Positions 3,651 through 43,022 of a DNA stretch of 64,000 nucleotides are shown in pieces. The first letter of the stretch is position 1, and each line of letters begins with the position of its first letter. The stretch is taken from contig JBLDXI010000024.1 of NCBI GenBank assembly GCA_047495785.1, forward strand, positions 1,674,001-1,738,000. The letters are read 5' to 3'. Both the position numbers and the translations under genes were made by a program. The DNA comes from Lepidodermella squamata. Taxonomy: Eukaryota > Animalia > Gastrotricha. The notes beneath the pieces were generated by a model that saw only the letters and a program-made list of their open reading frames with translations, did not search any database and was not told the DNA's origin.

Positions 3651-5287
3651 TCACATGAAGTAGAACGAGTCATTCATCCGTCCTGGCCTGAGGCCAAAAA
3701 CAGCCACTGGCCCTCCACTGCCGTTTTCGACCCGCAAATACGACAACACGCAGACGCCACCCTTGGTCGGAAATTTCGCCAAATCCTCGCCACCGCCGAT
3801 ATTTTCGATCGCAATCACGTCCGTACCAGCCAGGTAAACATGAGTCGGGTACAGCAGCTGCGATTCGAGCGAAAAATCGTCGATTAACAGGCTATCGATC
3901 GCGATGGCCGCAACTTTCCGCTCTTCAACCAAGTACCGAGCGCCATCAACTGACAGCCCTGGGAAATTTTTCGTGTATTTCTTCGGTGATTTCCAGTTAT
4001 CAGCGCCAAATCCGGTCACGAGAATGACCAAAGAATTGGACGGGATTGCGCCAAACCTTTTCTCCCATTCAGCCAGGTGTTGCGGTTCGATTGAAAAATT
4101 CGCTTTCCCGTTGTAGGGAATCTCAACTTTCAGGCAATGAAGCGGATCGTTAAGAACGCTGGGAAGGTGATTGATGTCATTTTTATCGGCGCCAAAGTGG
4201 TATGGAGCATCTGAATTCGCAAAAAATGTATTTAAAATAATTATTTATTTGAATTTATTTAAATTAATTATTTAAAATTTTTAATAAAAATTTAATTTAA
4301 ATTTGAAATAATTCCCAGAATTAATTTTTTACCTATGTGGGTGCTGAAATGGTCGAAAAATGCCAATCGCTTCGCATCGATGATTTTCGGATGGAAAACG
4401 TAGGGCGCGATCGGAACTTGTTCCGGCGGTCCGAATTCGTGGCTTAGCACTACGTCAGATTTTTTGAGGCAGCGATGCGTGACCGATTTCGTCCCAGGCG
4501 GGTAGACCACCAGATCGGCCAGGTTGATTTTCCGCGGCGGTCTCATAGCTCGCATCGAATCTGGCAGGGACGTCTCGGTTTTCAACGGTGTGAACACGAA
4601 TTTGAAGGCGTAGTACAGTTCGTCCTGTTCGTAGCCGAGGTGTTGGTACTGGTTACTACTGGGTCGAACCAGGTTGTCGAAGAAGGGCGTTCGATGCCGG
4701 ATCAAACTGTCTCGCATTGCGTCGGGCACTTTGGCATCGGAAAACCACCCTGTTGCAGCTTTTCGACTCGCTAAAGCTCGGAAAATTGATCCATCGTTGA
4801 GTTTCGTCAAATCACGGCCGAGAAATAGGACCAGCATATTCATCTTTACCTAGTTTTTTAAAATAATTTAAAAAATTTAAATTAAATTTAAAAAATTTCT
4901 TACTTCATTATGGAGCTTTTTCCTGACGGTTCCGATATCTGTTTCTCGAATGAAAATTGTTTCAATACAGCCCTGCATAGGTACTACAGGTAACATGTCC
5001 GGCTGTGTCCAAGTTGTGACCTTGTTTTGGCGAGGATCTACGCTGAGAATCGTCTCGGTGAACACCATGCGACCTTTATCGGTTTCGTTCATCCATTGGC
5101 TGTGATTGGCAAACACTTGCATGCCAACTTCGACGATGCTGCAATCGCTGCATTCTGATGTCTGGTTCCGGATGACTGCGCCTAGTCTGAGGCCGGTGGT
5201 TGCCAGCAGCGATGAAGGGTGGGCTGTTCGGGATTTTGCGGATGAACCGCCAACTATGGCTAAGATTACTAAAAGGCTCGAAAACAT
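3651..5287 (-). CDS. Secreted Cyclase-family metal-dependent hydrolase (kynurenine formamidase/isatin hydrolase-like), gene A
   Basis: Exons 5287-4904, 4849-4333, 4210-3651. Signal peptide MFSSLLVILAIVGGSSA; motif HFSTHI|DAPYH (HxGTHxDxPxH) split by an intron; FPGLS, AIAIDS, H..L....IENI, GSGGPV. No hydrophobic C-terminal tail. Confidence 0.85.
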
Positions 5288-18892: not shown

Positions 18893-21043
18893 ATGTTATC
18901 GAACTTTTGTATCTGTGCTGTTTTGTTGGCTGGGTTTCAACTAGCAGCCAGCAATATTGTCCCTTCGTCGAAACAAGCTCTGAACCGTTACCAGCTTGGT
19001 TTTATTCTGAATAAGAAGTCAATTCAGGGCAGCAATCTCGATTTCTCGTCCTTCGAATATTTCCGAAGTGATGGCGAGAAGAGCACGATGCGAAACATGA
19101 CCGCAACGGTGGACGTTAACTCGGTCAGCACCGGCAACAACTACGGCGTTACAACCTACACGACCTCAGTGAAATTGAGCGAGCCGCCGAAGCCCGATGA
19201 CGATTTCAGCGGCCTTGTTGAGAGCCATTACTGTCTCAAGACCTTCATCGGAACCTTCGACGACCTAATTTCTTTTTATGACAAGGTAAAGCACATATTG
19301 GTAGCGGCCGATTAAGTCTGATTTAGACTATTAAAGGTGACAAGTGACAATGAAAATCGGGTCTTAAATAATGTTTTTATTAAATTATTGACAAAAGCGT
19401 ATGACATCTATCACTGCCATCTTCAACTGACATTAAAAAATGTACCAGCGATAATTTTTATTAGTTCAATCGATCCCAGCCAAAATTGTGTGAATATCAC
19501 GAATCGTTTCTTCAACCCATTTGCATTATTGAAGTTCTGGGGCATTTTTTTAATTTTTACTCATTTATTACTCCATTTTTCGACAACGAATGAGATTATT
19601 TTTTCATAAAAAATCAACTAAAAGTTCAACTCTAATGTGATTTCCAGGTGAGGTCCTCGGTCCACCTTCCATATTTTGAATTTTCTATTCGTTTTTATTT
19701 CGGGTTATGGGTATCCCAGCTCTTGGTAGAGAATGTCAATTCAAAGTATTCGATTTCATTCTCGCGTTGCCTCATATTCATTAATTTTCAATAAAAAAAA
19801 CTTTTTTTAATAACGTGATCAGCTATCGCCGGTAATAACCGAGTCTACTCCTATGCAATACGTCCTGTTCATTATCACAGAGAAGTTTGACTCGTCAAAG
19901 TTCAGCGGCAAAGTACTTGCAGCAGCCAATGATAAGAATTACGTCAGGCTTACTCTCGGTTTCGTCCGCAACATCGGCAGGCTGTCGCAGTCAGACCGCG
20001 ATTCCATCATTCACGCCAGGATTCCGTTCTTCGAAAATCTCGTCCTGAAGCAGTCGGAAGATCTTGAAAACACAGATTTGCCTATCTACGCCTTCTCTCA
20101 CGTTTTCAGCTTGTTCAAGAACTACAGTTCGGTTTTCAAAAGCGAAACTGAAACGAAAGAGGAAGACGGCTTTCTGCTCTCTGTTGTCAATCTCGCCGAC
20201 GTCGTGTTGTTCGAAGCTGACGATAAATTGGAAAGCTACTGCAACAATCCCAAGAAGGACGTCTCCGTTCTGAGCCACCGCCTTAATACTGACAACTACC
20301 CGATGGCCGCTGGACTTCGCCGGCCGTCGGTGAAAATTGAAGTTCCGACCAAGGGAACCTGGCTGACGTTCGCCGGCCAGACTGGCACGCACCTGACTGC
20401 GCCCTTCCACTTCGATGAAAAAATGTCGAAAACCGCTGATTTGCCGAAGAAAACTTTCTTCGCACCCTGCGTCCGCATCAAGATTCCTTACTCATCGCTT
20501 GCTGAGAATAAAATCACCGTGTCTTTGATCAAGGATGCTGTTATGACCAGCAGCATTCCCAATGACGCCATCTTCGTGATTCACACCGAATTCGGCGAAG
20601 ACCATTGGATTCATGAGCCCGAAGCCTACAACACCGATTTTCCGGTTTTGGAAGAAGAAGCCGCCAAATACTTGGTTGAAGAGTACCAAGTAGCTGCTAT
20701 TGGCATTGACTCGCCGTCGCTGGATGATGGCAAGGATAATAAGTTCAAGACTCACGGTTATTTGGCTTCGAAGAACATTCCGACCCTGCTGAATCTCCGC
20801 CTGAGCGACTCGCTGATTGCTGAAAATGGCGCCCGTTGCGTGTTGACCTACCTGCGATCTGTCGATGGTACCGATGCTCCCCTGGGTCTGTTTGCTTTGA
20901 ATGGCTACGACTCGACGACTGTCTCGCCGATCGCGAGGTCAGTTGCCCCGAAAGCTCTTACTGAGGCCAAGGTGACGCTAACAACCGCTGATTCGACCTC
21001 GAGCACTTCAACTGTTTCACCGATCAGCTCTTCGACTGAAAAG
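18893..21043 (+). CDS. Secreted Cyclase-family protein, gene B (inactive motif; inverted duplicate of gene F with a decayed 3' end)
   Basis: Exons 18893-19285 and 19823-21043. Signal peptide; QTGTHLTAPFH in place of HxGTHxDxPxH; long near-identical stretches with 46612-48690; the terminal GPI exon survives only as a fragment at about 21225-21310. Confidence 0.8.
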
Positions 21044-35226: not shown

Positions 35227-38200
35227 TTAGAAGAATCGCAACCAAGCCAACGCGATCAGGTTGATGAAAACCGACGGCAAGGCCATCGATGCGCCGCTCT
35301 TCGGCTCGACCGGTTTCGCGGGAACTTCAAGCGGCTTGATAACCCGCGGCGACTCCTTCAACATGCCGAAAATCGCAACCGGGCTGCCTCCGCTTTTCTC
35401 CAATCGCAAATAGGCCAGCGTGCAATAGGCCGAGCCGTCATTTGTCAGCTTATCCAGCTCACCGCCGACATTTTCAAACTGAATGATACCTCGCTCGGAC
35501 AGGTAGACATGAACCGGGTAGTTGTTGTTCATCGCCGTCGCGTAGTCTTCAGTCAACAGGCTGTCGATGCCAATTGCTACGACTTTACGATCTTCAACCA
35601 AGAACTGGGCACCCTCGAGCGATAGACCAGGGAAATTCTTTGCGTAAACCTCCGGCTTGTCCCAGTTTTTCAGGCCGAAACCAGTCGATAGGATGACGAG
35701 CGATTTTTCCGGAATTTTCACGCCGGTTCTCGTTTCCCAGTCGACGAGGTGCTGCTTCATGATTGAAAAGTTGTCCCTATCGCCGTAAGGTACATCGACC
35801 CGGAGGCAGAGAGGCCGTTCCAGAACATCAGGTAACTCAAGCGTATCACCCTTGCCGGCATCTGTGTGGCCAGGCGTGTCGAGATGAGTGCCGTAGTGGT
35901 CGTAGAAAACCAGTTTCTTGCCGTTTTCAGTCAAAGTAGGGCGAGAGATGTTGGAACGAATCGGAACCTTCTCAGCCGGGCCCCAGTTATAGCTCAGCGA
36001 GATGTAGTTATTCTTCGAACAACGATCGACTACGTCACTGTCTCCAGCATCGAAAACGACAACATCACCGAGATTAACGCGACGAGGTGGCTGCATCGAT
36101 TTCACAGAATCGCCCAGGGAAGAGCCGTCAGCCATCGGGGCGAAGTTGAACTTGAAGCCGTAGTACAGCTTGTTTTCATCGATGTCATCCTCGTCGAAGT
36201 TGTGCTCGGGCCGGTGCAGGTTTTCAATCACGGTCATTTTAGCGTCGAGCAGCTTGTTGCGAATGTCGTCCGGCAGCTGAACTTCGTCGAAAAAGCCGAG
36301 ACACAGCTTCTTTGACGCGGCTTCCTTGATCAACTCGGGGTCGTGCAATTTGGCGAGGTCAGTCGTCAAGAAAAGCACCATTGTCTCTTCGTGAATCTGT
36401 CAAAAAATATAAAGAAGTCTTCAATTTCTTCAATTTTTGAATGTAAATTTAAAAAATTTGAAATTTAAAATTTCGATTTAAAATTGAAATTTTTTTTAAT
36501 TGTTTTATTTTTGAAGTTTTTTATTTTGTTAAATTTTTTTAGTCTAACCAACTCAAATGTCGAAGCTGTTAATTTTTGAAATTTTTTGAAATTTTGTAAT
36601 TTGAAATTGAAGTTTGAAATTTGAAACTAAACATTTTTGAATTTTGAATTTCTTTAAGGCTCAAAATTAGCTACCTCTTGAAGCCTTTTCCTGATAGTCG
36701 TCAGCTCAGTAGTCTTGATGAATCGGGTTTCAACACAGCCCTTGGTCCAGAACATTGGGAAGTCCATCGGCATGCTGAAAGTCGTCACCTTATTCAACGA
36801 CGGATTGACTCCAATCGTGATTTCGTTGAACTTCAGCTTGTTCTTCTCTTGCGGCGAAGTTTTGAACACGTCCATCATAACTTCTCGCAGCGAGCAATCG
36901 CAGCGTTCACCCTGGTGGCGGATCACGCGACCGAATTGCCAGCGCTGGTTCGAATCGCTGCTGGCTTTAGCTCCAATTCCGGAGAATGTTTCCTTGATTT
37001 TCGTGCCGACAGACGAGATTTTATCCGTGGCCATTGTGACGATCGACTTGCTTTCTTCCGGCTTCTTCTCTTCCGGCTTCTTCTCTTCAGTTTTGACACC
37101 TGTTGGCTGGCTTTCAACAACCGGCTTTTTCTCCTCGGTTTTGACAACAACGCCGCTCATATCCATATGGTCGTAGTTGGGTAGCCCGAAAACTGCGAGT
37201 GGCGACGAGGTTCCGCCGACAACGCGAAGGTAAGTGAAAACGCAACGAGAGCCGACATCTGGGAACTTTTCAGCGCCATCGAAACGCAGATTGACGAAGC
37301 TGGGGATGTTCTTGCTGGCTAGGTAGCCGTGCGATGGCCAAAGATTCTTGCTCGACTTGGAATAATCATCAAGCGTCATGCCTAAAAATTGGAAAAAATC
37401 GTTAAAAAAAATGTCGAAACAATTCAGGCAAAAAATTATATACAAAATTAAAAATTTAACAATTTAAATTATAATTAAAATAATTTCAAAAATGTTTAAA
37501 TTTCAAATTTTTCAAGGTTGACTTACTGTCAATGCCGACCGCAACAGCCTTGCGCTCTTCAACCAGCCATCTTAAAGCATCAACATCGATTCCGGGGTAG
37601 TCCTTGACGTACTTATCAACTGTAGACCACCGCTTGCCAAAGCCAGTATTGATCAAAATCGAACTGTACTCAGGAATGTGGATATTCTTATCCTTTTCCC
37701 ACTGCTCGAGATGGCCGCGAGTGACCATGTAATTCGCAGTTTCGCCGAATCGGACGTTGATGCAAACGCAGGGCGAGAAGAAGAAATCATTGTTGAGATT
37801 GGCGACATTCGCTTGGCTTTTATCGAATCGATACGGCGCAATCAAACTCGACCCAGTTTGGCCTGAGAATCGCAGCCAATGTTCGCTGTTCGTCTCGTTT
37901 CCAACCGTGATTTTGCGCTCGGATAACCGCGGCAGTTCGAAGCCTTGAAGTAGTGGCACGTTCTCGGACAACATATTCCGGCCGAAGCTGACGATTTCAT
38001 TCGCTTTTTCCTGGCAGAATTTGTTCAGCTTTTCATCGCCCTCGAACAGAACCATGTCAGCGAGATTGACAAGCGCCTTCAGCTGAACCTTTTCGTTGCT
38101 GTAGATCGACGTAGCATTCGAAAACGGCATGAAGATCAGCTTGAAACCGTGGTATTTTTTGTCGGATTTAACAATGGTCAGCAGGTCGATTTCGGCTGGC

Positions 38201-38874
38201 AGATCGATGTTTTCGATGAACGGAATGTGGTCGTTGACCAACGACTCTCGGCAACTGTTTTCAAGCGGCTTGAGGCGCTTCAGAAATCCGATCTTAACCT
38301 TCTTCTCGCGCAGTTGCATCCGAATGTTGGTGTTCATTTTCGATTCGACAATATCGTTCGACATGATCAGCAAACAGTCTTCGGGAATCTATCGAAATTT
38401 CAAAATTTTAAATAAAATTTCAATTTTTCAATAATTTTTTCAACAATTTCAGATTAATTTTGCATGCAAATTTTGACGAACCTTCTCTTTTGTGGCCAAG
38501 TCTTCAAAGGCCAGAAACTTGACGCAGAAGCAGCCGCGTTGATGGTCTTCAATCAGCTTGGTGTAGTCAGTTCCCTTGTAATCGCTCGGAATCGGGATGG
38601 TCACCATAGTTCGCCGGTACCGCATTGGGTCGATGCCGATATTGATGTACTTGCCAAGCATTTTCGCCGTTTCATTTCCGGCCTTGTAGTAGTCGACCAA
38701 ATCGCCGGCATGTTCCAGCAAAACGCCGTCACCCTCGTCCGACTTGATCTCGGAGCCAAGTTGGAACCGCTTCGGTTTCGTCGCCGATAGTGGCTTCATT
38801 TCGACCTCGCCGGTCGCGCCCACCAGCGTTGTCACGGCAGCAAAACATATCAACAATTTTGCGAAAAGTTGCAT
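35227..38874 (-). CDS. GPI-anchored two-module Cyclase-family protein, gene C (module 1 inactive, module 2 intact)
   Basis: Exons 38874-38482, 38388-37527, 37381-36675, 36396-35227. Signal peptide; QTGSSLIAPYR (dead); KTEEKKP linker repeats; HYGTHLDTPGH and HVYL..FENV (intact); tail KSGASMALPSVFINLIALAWLRFF. Confidence 0.85.
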
Positions 38875-39148: not shown

Positions 39149-42100
39149 TTAAAATCGAACGAAATAGACCAAAAACAGGGCGACAATGCCGGTGAAAACG
39201 TAAGGAGCCGCGTTCGAGCCTTCGTTGCCTTGCTTAGTTGCCAGAGTTTCGACTTCAACAGCCAGCGACGGGCGGGAGGTTGGGAGATCGGGTAGGCCGA
39301 ACAAGGCAACCTGAGCTGCGGTTCCTTTCTGGTAGCGGATGTAGGACATGACTGCCCGACCGCCGAATCCGTTCAGGTAGTCGAGATCGCGGCCGATGTT
39401 GACAAAGGTGATGACTTTTTGACTGGCCAGGTATTCATGGGTTGGGAATTTGCCTTGGTTAGCGAGCTTGAAGCTGTCGAGAGCCATGCCTTATTATAAA
39501 AAAAATTCAGAGTAAAACTGAAATTTGGTGTGCGGAGTGGAAACCCTAAATTGAGGGTTCAGCATCAAATTTGAGGCTCCAGCACCCATAGCACTCGATT
39601 TTCCCAAAATATGGTTTTCGAGTTTCAAGTAATCCCAAGAATCACTATTTTTCATTATGATCGATGACTTTACGAGTTTTACTCCAGCCTTCAGAGCCGA
39701 TACCGATTCCAAGTATCGAATTTGCAAATCAGTGATTTTTCCGATATCAGAAGTTATGGAAGCCAGCAATCGCAAATTTTCATTATACCCCTATTCTTTA
39801 GGGTATCAGGTAGCTAGAATAAATATTCCCAAGGTCATGGAGGGGTCCAATTTCGATCAAGAAAAGAGTCGGAAAACTTGAGAGTACCTCGTTTGTGGGC
39901 CACAGAAATCGCATAAAAACCGTAGCAGCACAATTGTGGCGCAAATATTTGTTTGCACTGGGTCAAAATAATAATATGACTCACTCGTACAAATCGCGCG
40001 CTTAACTAGGTCAGGTCATTCGATTTAATGATGATTTTAGCAAAAAGAGAAGCTGAGAAAAAGTCGTCGTGCTTAATGACGAACCTGAGGAACCTCAATT
40101 TTCAACCCAATTAAATTTGAACTTACTATCGATGCCGATAGCAATCGCTTTTCGTTCCTCAACCAGAAACTTGGCAGCCTCGAGCGAAAGGCCCGGGAAA
40201 TTGACCTGATACACCGAGGGTAACAGCCATTTATTGCCATGATCGGTATCGATAACAATCAAAGCGTAGTCTGGGATTGTTTGCTTGGTTTCCTTCTCGA
40301 ATTTCTCGATATCTTCACGCTTGATCGAGTAATCAGGCCCAGCCGGGATCTTCACCTTGACCAGCACTGGGTTATCGAAATAGGTCGGCACTTTCGTAGT
40401 GTCGAAGGCGTTTGAGAAGTAGTGGAAGGGCGCGTCGAAATGCGTGCCAAAGTGGTCGGAGAATCGAATTTTATCCGAATCGTTGACTCGAGTCGGCGCG
40501 ATGACGCCCTGGAAAACGGGGATTTTTTCGGCCGGGGCGAAGTTCTGGCTCAAAACTCGGACACCCTCCCACGCGTTCGGCTTCGAGCAACGGGCGTAGA
40601 CCTCGGCAGTCCACGGCTGGTTGTCGAAAACGACCAAATCCGCCAGGTTGATGTTGCGCGACGGGTTCATCTTCAACGAGCGAAGCAGCGACGTTTCTTC
40701 CTTCATCGGCGCGAAAACAAACTTGAAGCTGTAGTACACCTTGTCCTCGGAGATTTTGTCGTCGTTGAACACGCCGTCTTCAGGCCGGGCCAGGTTTTCG
40801 AAGAAAGAAATGCCGGCTTTGACGAAATCGTTCTGCAGATTGGTCGGCAGTTTTGATGAACCGAAAAATCCGACGGTGATCTTCTTATCAGCGAGGGTCT
40901 TGATGATTTCGCCGGTTAGAGCTGTCGAAAGGTCCCAGGCCATGAAAATCACAATGTTACCGGGTTTGACCTGGAAAAAGAGACAAAAAACAATTCTTGA
41001 TTGTAATTTTATTCAAATAAATTTTTTTCATTAATCAATTTAAATAAAAACATTCCCGGTTTAGCGAGTGATAGCGGCTGAAAATACATTTTTTCTCAAT
41101 TTTTGAAAAAAAATCTGGGAAATTTAGAGGCATATAAATTTGCTAATGAGCGTCCAAAATGACCTACTAATTATTCACCTTTTTATGCGAACATATTTTA
41201 AATTTCCAAAAATCAGGGAAAATTCGGAAAATCGCAGCAGCTGGAAATTTTGGTCCAAATTTTTTTAATTGAAAATTCAGTTTTTTGTAATTTTCAAATG
41301 ATCTATTTACCTGGCTAAGCTTTGCCTTGATCACAGCCGAATCGACAGATTTGATGAAATAGGTTTCCAGGCACCCTGCAATGGCTTTGCTAGGCAGATG
41401 AGCGCCGTGATCTTCCGCCTTCAACGGAGTCGTGAACGTAGTCACCTTGTTCTTCGTCGGATCAACCGTCAACTCGACTTCATTCGCCAACAAGCGATCT
41501 TTCAAAACCATCGCCAACTTTTGAGTGCTAACCGGGTGAACATCGATATCAGCGTTCTTCTTGATAACCGCGCCGAGTTGCCAACGGGCTGAAACCGAAG
41601 GCCCGGTTTCTTCGGATGAAACGTCGTAATTCGGCAGGGCGTAGATTGCGACGGGAGACGCGAGGCTTTCAGCAATTCGAAGCGGCGCGATGATACAACG
41701 GGCACCAGCTACGTTTTCCGGGAAGGTCGAATCCTCGATCCGGACATTGGCTAGAACTGGAATGTTGCGCTCGGCGAGGTAGCCATGAGCTGGGTACTTA
41801 TTTCCGACACCATCGTCGAGCTGCATGGTATCAATACCGATAGCAATTGCCTTTTTCTGCTCAACCAAAAATCGCGCAGCATCGGCCTCAAGAACCGGGT
41901 AGTTCGAGCCGTAAACATTCGCGTTGTTCCAATATTTCACGCCGAAACCAGTGTCGAGGAAAATGATTGACTTGTCAGAAATCGATCGCTTCGCAACGAG
42001 GTCTTCAATCATTTTCGCCGTGATTTTTTGGGTATTCGCGGGAATTTTCACGCGAACACACGGCGCGAAATAGGTGTTATCGGGCAATCGCGATACGGTT

Positions 42101-43022
42101 GGCTTGTCAAGGTCGAATCGCTTCGGCGCCACGACGTGAGTGCCGGTTCGGCCGGAGAATTTCAGCCAATTTTCACCACTGACTTTGCTACCAGCGAACC
42201 TAGCGCGTTGAACATCGCTTGGCACCGGGTAATTATCGCTGAGAATGTTTTGCGTCAAAATCTGAACCCGACGCTCGGCGCAGTGCTTCGTCATTCTTTC
42301 ATCGGTTTCGAACAGGGTCAAATCAATCAAATTGACTGAAATATCGCCGTTCGAGGTCGTGACCGAGGTGCCGTTTTTGAATGGCGAGAAGACGAATTTG
42401 AACGCGTAGAGAATTTTAGTCGACGCCTTGGTAAGATCGAGACTGGCTGGAATTTCGACATTTTCAATCAGATCGATGCCACTTTCGATGAGCAGCTTTC
42501 GCGAGGCCGAGTCGATAGGGAAAGCCTTCTGAATGGCAAAGGTGAAGCGGCGGCGGGCTGATTTCAGCTTATTCAACAGATTCGCATCGAAATAACGTGA
42601 GTCGAAGCTGTCCGTGAACAGGATGAAAGATCCGATTGGAAGCTGGTAAAAGGTTCAATAAATAAAATCGAGCTTCAAAAAATGTAAATTACATTATCGA
42701 TGTATCCTGCAACTTCCTTGAAACCAAGTACGAGGGTCTTGATGCAGCCTTCGCTTCTAATTCGTTCAGCGATGTTCGACCCGGAAATTGTTGAAAAGGT
42801 CGTGAACTTGTATGTTTCGAAATAATCGATGCCGACTGATATTTCGGCCTTAGCCATCATGCCCTTGGCATCGCCGGCCTTTTTGTACTCAACTGGCGGC
42901 TGAACTTCAGTTACTGAACCTTCTCCACTACCAATAACGCGGCTCAGGGAGTAACGACGCGGCAAAGTATTGTTCGCGTTGGCGAAACAAAACAGCGTTA
43001 AAATTAAAATTAAAATGTTCAT
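39149..43022 (-). CDS. GPI-anchored two-module Cyclase-family protein, gene D
   Basis: Exons 43022-42693, 42642-41311, 40970-40127, 39489-39149. Signal peptide; RTGTHVVAPKR (dead), then HFGTHFDAPFH; tail GSNAAPYVFTGIVALFLVYFVRF. Confidence 0.85.

Follow-up and report, generated by a model that had tools for sequence, protein, structure and literature searches.

A gastrotrich gene family in which each module probably joins a degenerate cyclase fold to a cyclase core in a single chain

Proteins of the KynB/isatin-hydrolase fold have been described as functional only as dimers, each pocket being completed by the other subunit. KynB forms an obligate dimer: the beta2-beta3 hairpins of both subunits combine into one sheet, and the pocket is built partly by the partner (PMC4243253). 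For isatin hydrolase, likewise a dimer, the presence of partner residues in the pocket has been called a hallmark of the fold (PMC6117287). In this study, we analyzed a 64,000-nucleotide stretch of contig JBLDXI010000024.1 of the small freshwater gastrotrich Lepidodermella squamata (the window), in which positions 35227-36940 are module C2, the second module of the intron-bearing minus-strand gene C. The initial annotation proposed that every module of this family consists of a degenerate cyclase fold (the N-half) fused to a cyclase core, so that genes C and D would carry four cyclase folds each, and this description was supported, with the fold test and the profile test both favorable. We consider it highly probable that the N-half is a cyclase-type fold without a metal site, and probable that it is homologous to the cyclase family. 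We also believe that the overall explanation, namely a module of two cyclase folds in one chain with the diverged N-half as a fixed dimer partner, is reasonably likely.

Gene C starts with a signal peptide, which is followed by module C1 (38781-37131), a Lys/Glu/Pro-rich linker, C2 (36953-35323), and a hydrophobic tail like that of glycosylphosphatidylinositol (GPI)-anchored proteins. Its exons join in frame via GT..AG introns. The parts of C2 are as follows.

36675..36953, minus strand: first exon piece of the N-half (RWQFG ... GVNPSLNKVTTF ... GCVETRF ... RLQE), hidden Markov model (HMM) match with E 2.9e-28
36397..36674, minus strand: intron within the N-half, GT..AG, phase 0, at profile position ~99/100
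36043..36396, minus strand: second exon piece of the N-half, the beta-alpha-beta-alpha-beta-alpha-beta-beta part (VLFLTTD, CLGFFD, VIENL, FKFNFAPM) and the closing strand VNLGDVVVFDAG
35323..36042, minus strand: cyclase core, Pfam PF04199 (VHVYLS, QFENV, GSPVAIFGM)
35230..35322, minus strand: C-terminal end, a Pro/Ser-rich stalk and a hydrophobic tail (ALPSVFINLIALAWLRFF)

The beginning of the fold, a beta-rich part with the hairpin, is predicted to come from the first exon piece, and the position and phase of the intron behind it are common to most modules in the N-half alignment (A2). The aligned ranges of the structural model place the end of the N-half at about residue 213. In the core, the HMM match, the metal motif, and the fold of the Cyclase family PF04199 were all found: Pfam recognized residues 143-277 of the large C2 exon (E 1.3e-22; gathering score of the family, 23.1 bits), and the metal motif HYGTHLDTPGH is intact at 35898-35866. 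Judged by its residues, the tail ALPSVFINLIALAWLRFF looks like a GPI-anchor signal.

Two related mRNA-like contigs show the same architecture free of introns. P0001 (574 amino acids, aa) shares 57% identity with the second C2 exon, the one encoding the core and the remainder of the N-half, and P0002 (1045 aa) carries two modules in a single open reading frame (ORF). The unspliced stand-in for C2 was P0001:76-530, and the window exons entered the alignments as separate rows. The N-half modelled alone with AF2 from alignment A2 had a mean predicted local distance difference test score (pLDDT) of 68.6; residues 57-178 scored 85-92, the first 56 residues were poor, and 72 residues were below 50. 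The top Foldseek matches of this model in the PDB were 1r61, 4co9, 3krv, 8hmo, 2b0a, 4cob, and 5nna (E 8e-4 to 1e-2, probability 0.94-1.0), and ranks 1-6 of the unbiased VIA search (48,161 representatives) were the cyclase-family chains 2b0a, 8hmo, 4j0n, 4co9, 8f9x, and 5ibz. The cyclase family was the best structural match in both searches, in agreement with the claim that the N-half on its own resembles KynB and isatin hydrolase. In the model, the N-half has the distorted barrel, three helices, and swivelling beta/alpha/beta core of the KynB-type fold. Alternatively, the N-half might be an unrelated swivelling beta/beta/alpha domain (LD-carboxypeptidase C-domain, MccF, RraA, or DRTGG-like) joined to a cyclase, and the resemblance would then be fold-level convergence. 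However, these families align over only 90-135 residues, whereas cyclases align over 144-166 residues of the N-half model with both chains covered end to end, and all cyclase-family representatives rank first.

Profile comparison with hhalign gave a concordant result. Alignment A2 (20 rows, many of them fragments; effective number of sequences, Neff, 3.6) contains no core sequence, and it was compared with a broad cyclase profile of animal cores and bacterial cyclases (Neff 5.2). The score was 32.3 (P 4e-4, probability 35%, 98 columns). The reversed control scored 12.2, 100 block shuffles had a mean of 20.5 and a maximum of 25.7, and 60 column shuffles had a mean of 11.2 and a maximum of 16.1; none of the 160 shuffles reached the real score. 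The echo between N-half and core is therefore beyond chance, and the profile similarity to the Cyclase family, by which the initial annotation had proposed to test itself, was seen in the register that it had suggested. When the template held bacterial cyclases only, without any animal sequence, the register was the same (P 1e-3, probability 21%). Extending the N-half to the VNLAD strand gave no higher score, DSSP strings added as secondary structure made no contribution to it, and the -glob mode was rejected, as its end alignment was meaningless. The similarity of the N-half to cyclases at the sequence level is real but weak. Because the similarity (P 4e-4 to 1e-3) is specific to cyclase profiles and lies in a structurally correct register, and because bacterial single-chain proteins with two bona fide Cyclase domains exist, we consider an unrelated domain to be improbable.

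The whole-module model had a pLDDT of 90.8 and a predicted template modelling score (pTM) of 0.90. On this model, the hhalign register pairs five consecutive secondary-structure elements correctly (H, helix; E, strand).

N-half elements: H86-95 / E102-105 / H116-124 / E128-132 / H139-147 / E151-156
Core counterparts, in the same order: H310-320 / E328-333 / H356-365 / E370-373 / H390-397 / E401-404

The N-terminal hairpin region had a pLDDT of 41-54 in the N-only model and 81-94 in the presence of the core, with equal alignment depth there. The packing of N-half and core as one confidently predicted unit is strongly supported by the models. When N-half and core were given as two chains to a complex prediction, the score was 0.00; the prediction was run with ESMFold2 without the chains' own alignments, the fold of the partner was uncertain, and the result was not used. 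The modest confidence of the N-only model and the small, fragmentary A2 alignment would fit an artefact, in which a shallow alignment and a mediocre model produce the similarity and the N-half is not definably related to any known fold. We consider this very improbable, because residues 57-178 are well predicted even alone, the same elements exceed 90 in the whole-module model, and two structural aligners and one sequence-only method concur.

Several results weigh against the reading of the N-half as a cyclase fold and dimer partner. The modelled protein was the ortholog P0001 (50-63% identical) and not the spliced protein of the window itself. Cyclase PF04199 did not match P0001:76-280 even at E 10, nor did it match the N-half exons of the window, and the genome-wide scan with this family found cores only. 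The N-half profile found no cyclase among the PDB sequences. The hhalign probability was only 21-35%, and the comparison with animal cores alone was not significant (P 0.06-0.09); the single alignment to animal cores still followed the proposed register (VIFLTT with LVFLSTG, CLGFF with GIGIDS, FFENL with IIENI). The dimer-like placement of the N-half is inferred indirectly.

The strings on which the initial annotation relied were all located in the minus-strand frames. Those of the N-half are VLFLTTD (36378-36358), CLGFFD (36303-36286), VIENL (36231-36217), and FKFNFAPM (36156-36133), and those of the core are VILSTG (35697-35680), AIGIDS (35577-35560), VHVYLS (35514-35497), and QFENV (35481-35467). 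Further N-half strings are RWQFG (36944-36930), NKVTTF (within 36812-36777), GCVETRF (36740-36720), and VNLGDVVVF (from 36078). The shared N-half motifs, R[WYF]QLG, VTT, GC.ET.F, F.ENL, and NLAD.V.F, recur across the family alignment (A2). The assignment of NLAD.V.F to the N-half also agreed with the structure, in which it looks like the last N-half strand and precedes the start of the solved-cyclase alignment on the core (model residue 211-225). The His-rich metal motif is absent from the N-half. Its vestige could lie in either of two registers, MMRFSEIGLTVDP or NKLTTFTQP against MMFFDHFGTHIDSP, and the choice is ambiguous; of the metal-site elements, only the ...ENL strand is retained.

With the whole-module profile, nine modules were found in the window, and another two (L001a and L001b, at locus L001, G000:C24:2148000-2157999) lie on the same contig at a distance of 440 kb. 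In the upstream frames, both N-half pieces were present in 9/9 window modules, as had been claimed for every module. The neighboring modules are arranged as follows.

37131..38781, minus strand: module C1, N-half pieces 38467-38781 and 38071-38388, core 37525-38070 and 37131-37379
39275..42890, minus strand: gene D, modules D1 and D2
42708-42890 and 42340-42630, minus strand: N-half pieces of D1; core 41617-42339, degenerate
41311-41592 and 40653-40970, minus strand: N-half pieces of D2; core 40125-40652 and 39275-39487, intact DHFGTHFDAPFH

Among the 11 modules (window 3687-52164 and L001), the core keeps DH.GTH.D.P.H in C2, D2, 5191-3687, 50823-49813, and L001b, and the motif is degenerate in C1 (FSGQTGSSLIAPYRF), D1, 19895-20941(+), 47946-46909, 45106-43221, and L001a. 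The statement that the degenerate cyclase is fused to an intact one thus applies to C2, D2, and some others, but not to C1, D1, and three further window modules, in which both halves are without a metal site. The later metal-ligand Glu (..ENxG) is retained in only some modules with an intact core motif, and the F(F/I)ENL of the N-half is retained in nearly all modules. The identities to orthologs were 57/38/28% for the N-half and 55/42/33% for the core, so the N-half is about as well conserved as the core. In module 5191-3687, an intron (window 4217-4334) falls within the metal motif (DHFSTHI | NSDAPYH). Elsewhere in the genome there are at least 16 PF04199 matches, mostly on C24 (e.g., G000:C24:2315281-2495544), and two identical weak partial matches lie at C21:2368179 and C25:2431724.

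Gene C is probably spliced and expressed; that sequencing run X1 is RNA is a guess, but its intron-skipping behavior was as expected of RNA. One X1 contig skips exactly from 36396 to 36675 (278 bases, CT..AC on the plus strand), the X1 depth is near zero over the 36397-36674 intron, and X1 contigs leave the gene C introns almost uncovered. Several short X1 contigs within 35898-38175 have joints between opposite strands about 100 bases apart, which are probably assembly artefacts. In the AT-rich intron sequence at 36445-36602, DNA run X2 shows 13 bases missing at 36600, a 100-base skip at 36473-36574, and loose ends, which suggests that the intron differs in length between alleles or strains. 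The C1-C2 linker (36990-37130, minus strand) is a Lys/Glu/Pro-rich repeat (KTEEKKP...), and both sequencing runs show a 3-base length difference in it, at 37115.

How would such a module work? We propose that each module forms two KynB/isatin-hydrolase-type (swivelling beta/alpha/beta) folds in a single chain. The first ~213 residues would be a highly diverged copy, which lost the HxGTHxDxPxH metal site and retained its fold, the order of strands and helices, and some vestiges (...ENL), and the next ~235 residues would be the core that Pfam recognizes. The N-half may take the place of the second subunit in the obligate dimer of bacterial KynB/isatin hydrolase; its beta-hairpin would contribute to a common sheet and to the core's substrate pocket, and a single chain would then have one working active site, or none in modules of the C1/D1 type. 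In a dimer of the KynB/isatin type, the partner lies on the beta1/beta11/beta12 face, the hairpins together make a sheet of four strands, and the pocket is lined by residues of the partner. It is somewhat likely that the N-half replaces the dimer partner in this way. Three observations hint indirectly at a fixed partner: the hairpin is placed with confidence only in models that include the core, conservation of the N-half is about equal to that of the core, and VDPxxNxVTT is kept where the core keeps DHxGTHxDxPxH. The VDPxxNxVTT motif is changed in modules of the C1/D1 type with a dead core, a co-occurrence that is confounded by paralog clades.

The N-half might instead be of the cyclase type and pack elsewhere on the core as a binding, scaffolding, or regulatory domain, while the core may dimerize via the ancestral interface. 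The data cover the fold and the joint confidence of both halves (the pTM above), and modules with a dead core keep a conserved N-half; therefore, the role of the N-half need not be catalytic. However, the placement of the hairpin only with the core and the co-occurrence of VDPxxNxVTT with intact core metal motifs, subject to the same confounding, argue against this arrangement, as does the description of pocket completion by the partner as a hallmark of this fold (PMC6117287). We consider packing elsewhere unlikely, although far from negligible. A further and tentative possibility is that the dead N-half is the functional partner subunit of a one-chain enzyme, whose hairpin and VDPxxNxVTT would line and tune the core pocket. 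The nine-module array might then be a set of diversified secreted, membrane-tethered amidohydrolases and ligand-binding pseudoenzymes, derived from a bacterial fused pseudo-dimer that was taken up by the animal lineage. The hint of activity is limited to the source label of P0001, "kynurenine formamidase"; kynurenine formamidase or isatin hydrolase activity, which would involve Zn or Mn binding and hydrolysis of N-formylkynurenine or isatin, is putative.

Fused double-cyclase proteins are a bacterial invention. Tandem Cyclase-Cyclase ORFs (556 aa), with both domains visible to Pfam, were found in 2/151 Acidobacteriota genomes (L004:913-2580:- in G006 and L005:379-2664:+ in G132; ~556 aa, 75% identical to each other). 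The metal motif of the first domain is degenerate (NNTGTHLVGPRAFH), compared with HLATHMDGEKH in the second. This tandem is a natural fused pseudo-dimer and a direct precedent. No account of tandem or pseudo-dimeric PF04199 proteins, the Acidobacteriota tandem included, turned up in a literature search. In the ESM Atlas, a bacterial PF04199 cluster of 565 aa ("putative cyclase family protein", 98 members, Planctomycetota commonest) matched query residues 1-444 (template modelling score 0.78, 405 residues aligned, root-mean-square deviation 3.2). Because this cluster matches both halves, the two-fold event probably predates the animal lineage, and the two-fold architecture is probably older than the animal. 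By hhalign, the N-half resembles bacterial cyclases at least as much as its own core, so nothing points to a recent internal duplication. The "old internal duplication" that had been proposed and a fusion of two cyclase genes were indistinguishable on these data.

The sequence searches gave few relatives of the N-half. When 1.84 billion representatives were searched exhaustively by HMMER with the N-half, only five clusters were returned, all of them N-half-plus-cyclase proteins. The N-half profile was not significant against the Acidobacteriota tandem family (P 0.37), and a collinear alignment of the whole module to that family was rejected, as it was driven by the core only. Queried with the N-half, the ESM Atlas feature search returned nothing usable; with the Acidobacteriota tandem protein, it returned single-domain clusters only, with no link to the 565-aa cluster. 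A word search with the module profile for bacterial two-fold relatives returned only single-domain cyclases of 165-278 aa, and the related-locus search with alignment A5 returned one plain 213-aa KynB-like gene. Sixteen long PF04199 open frames in Acidobacteriota were rejected as two-fold relatives, being single-domain genes with a non-coding upstream frame. The animal version is a far more diverged form, which was probably acquired or inherited as a unit. There are hints of a bacterial source for the two-fold architecture as one unit, and in our proposal it was most likely inherited whole from a bacterial-type ancestor instead of being an animal invention.

For annotation, each "Cyclase" gene here probably carries twice the cyclase folds that Pfam reports. 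If the proposal is true, it explains 200 unannotated residues per module throughout this animal gene family. Such a single-chain protein in nature, with one of its halves dead, would also show how a dimer of this kind becomes asymmetric, and it would offer a practical monomeric scaffold on which to study the influence of the partner half on substrate choice.

KynB (PDB 4CO9, 4COB, 4COG; relatives 1R61, 3KRV, 8HMO, 2B0A) is a single-domain cytosolic homodimer of ~205-aa subunits with two active sites. In contrast, the animal module has two unequal folds in one secreted chain, at most one metal site, and a first fold that is invisible to Pfam. Isatin hydrolase (PDB 4J0N, 4M8D, 5NNA, 5NMP) also differs from the animal module, as it is a homodimer of identical active subunits with no tandem and no degenerate half. 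The Acidobacteriota tandem shares with the animal module two cyclase folds per chain, the first with a degenerate metal motif; unlike in the animal module, Pfam sees both of its halves, which carry long insertions and measure ~280 aa each, and there is no signal peptide or GPI-like tail. The 565-aa ESM Atlas cluster, compared by shape only, is like the animal module in that it superposes on both halves at once. The C1 and C2 halves of mammalian class III adenylyl cyclases, another single-chain pseudo-dimer with one dead site, follow a matching logic, in which a homodimeric ancestor was fixed in one chain with one catalytic and one degenerate site; their fold and chemistry are unrelated to those of the family described here.
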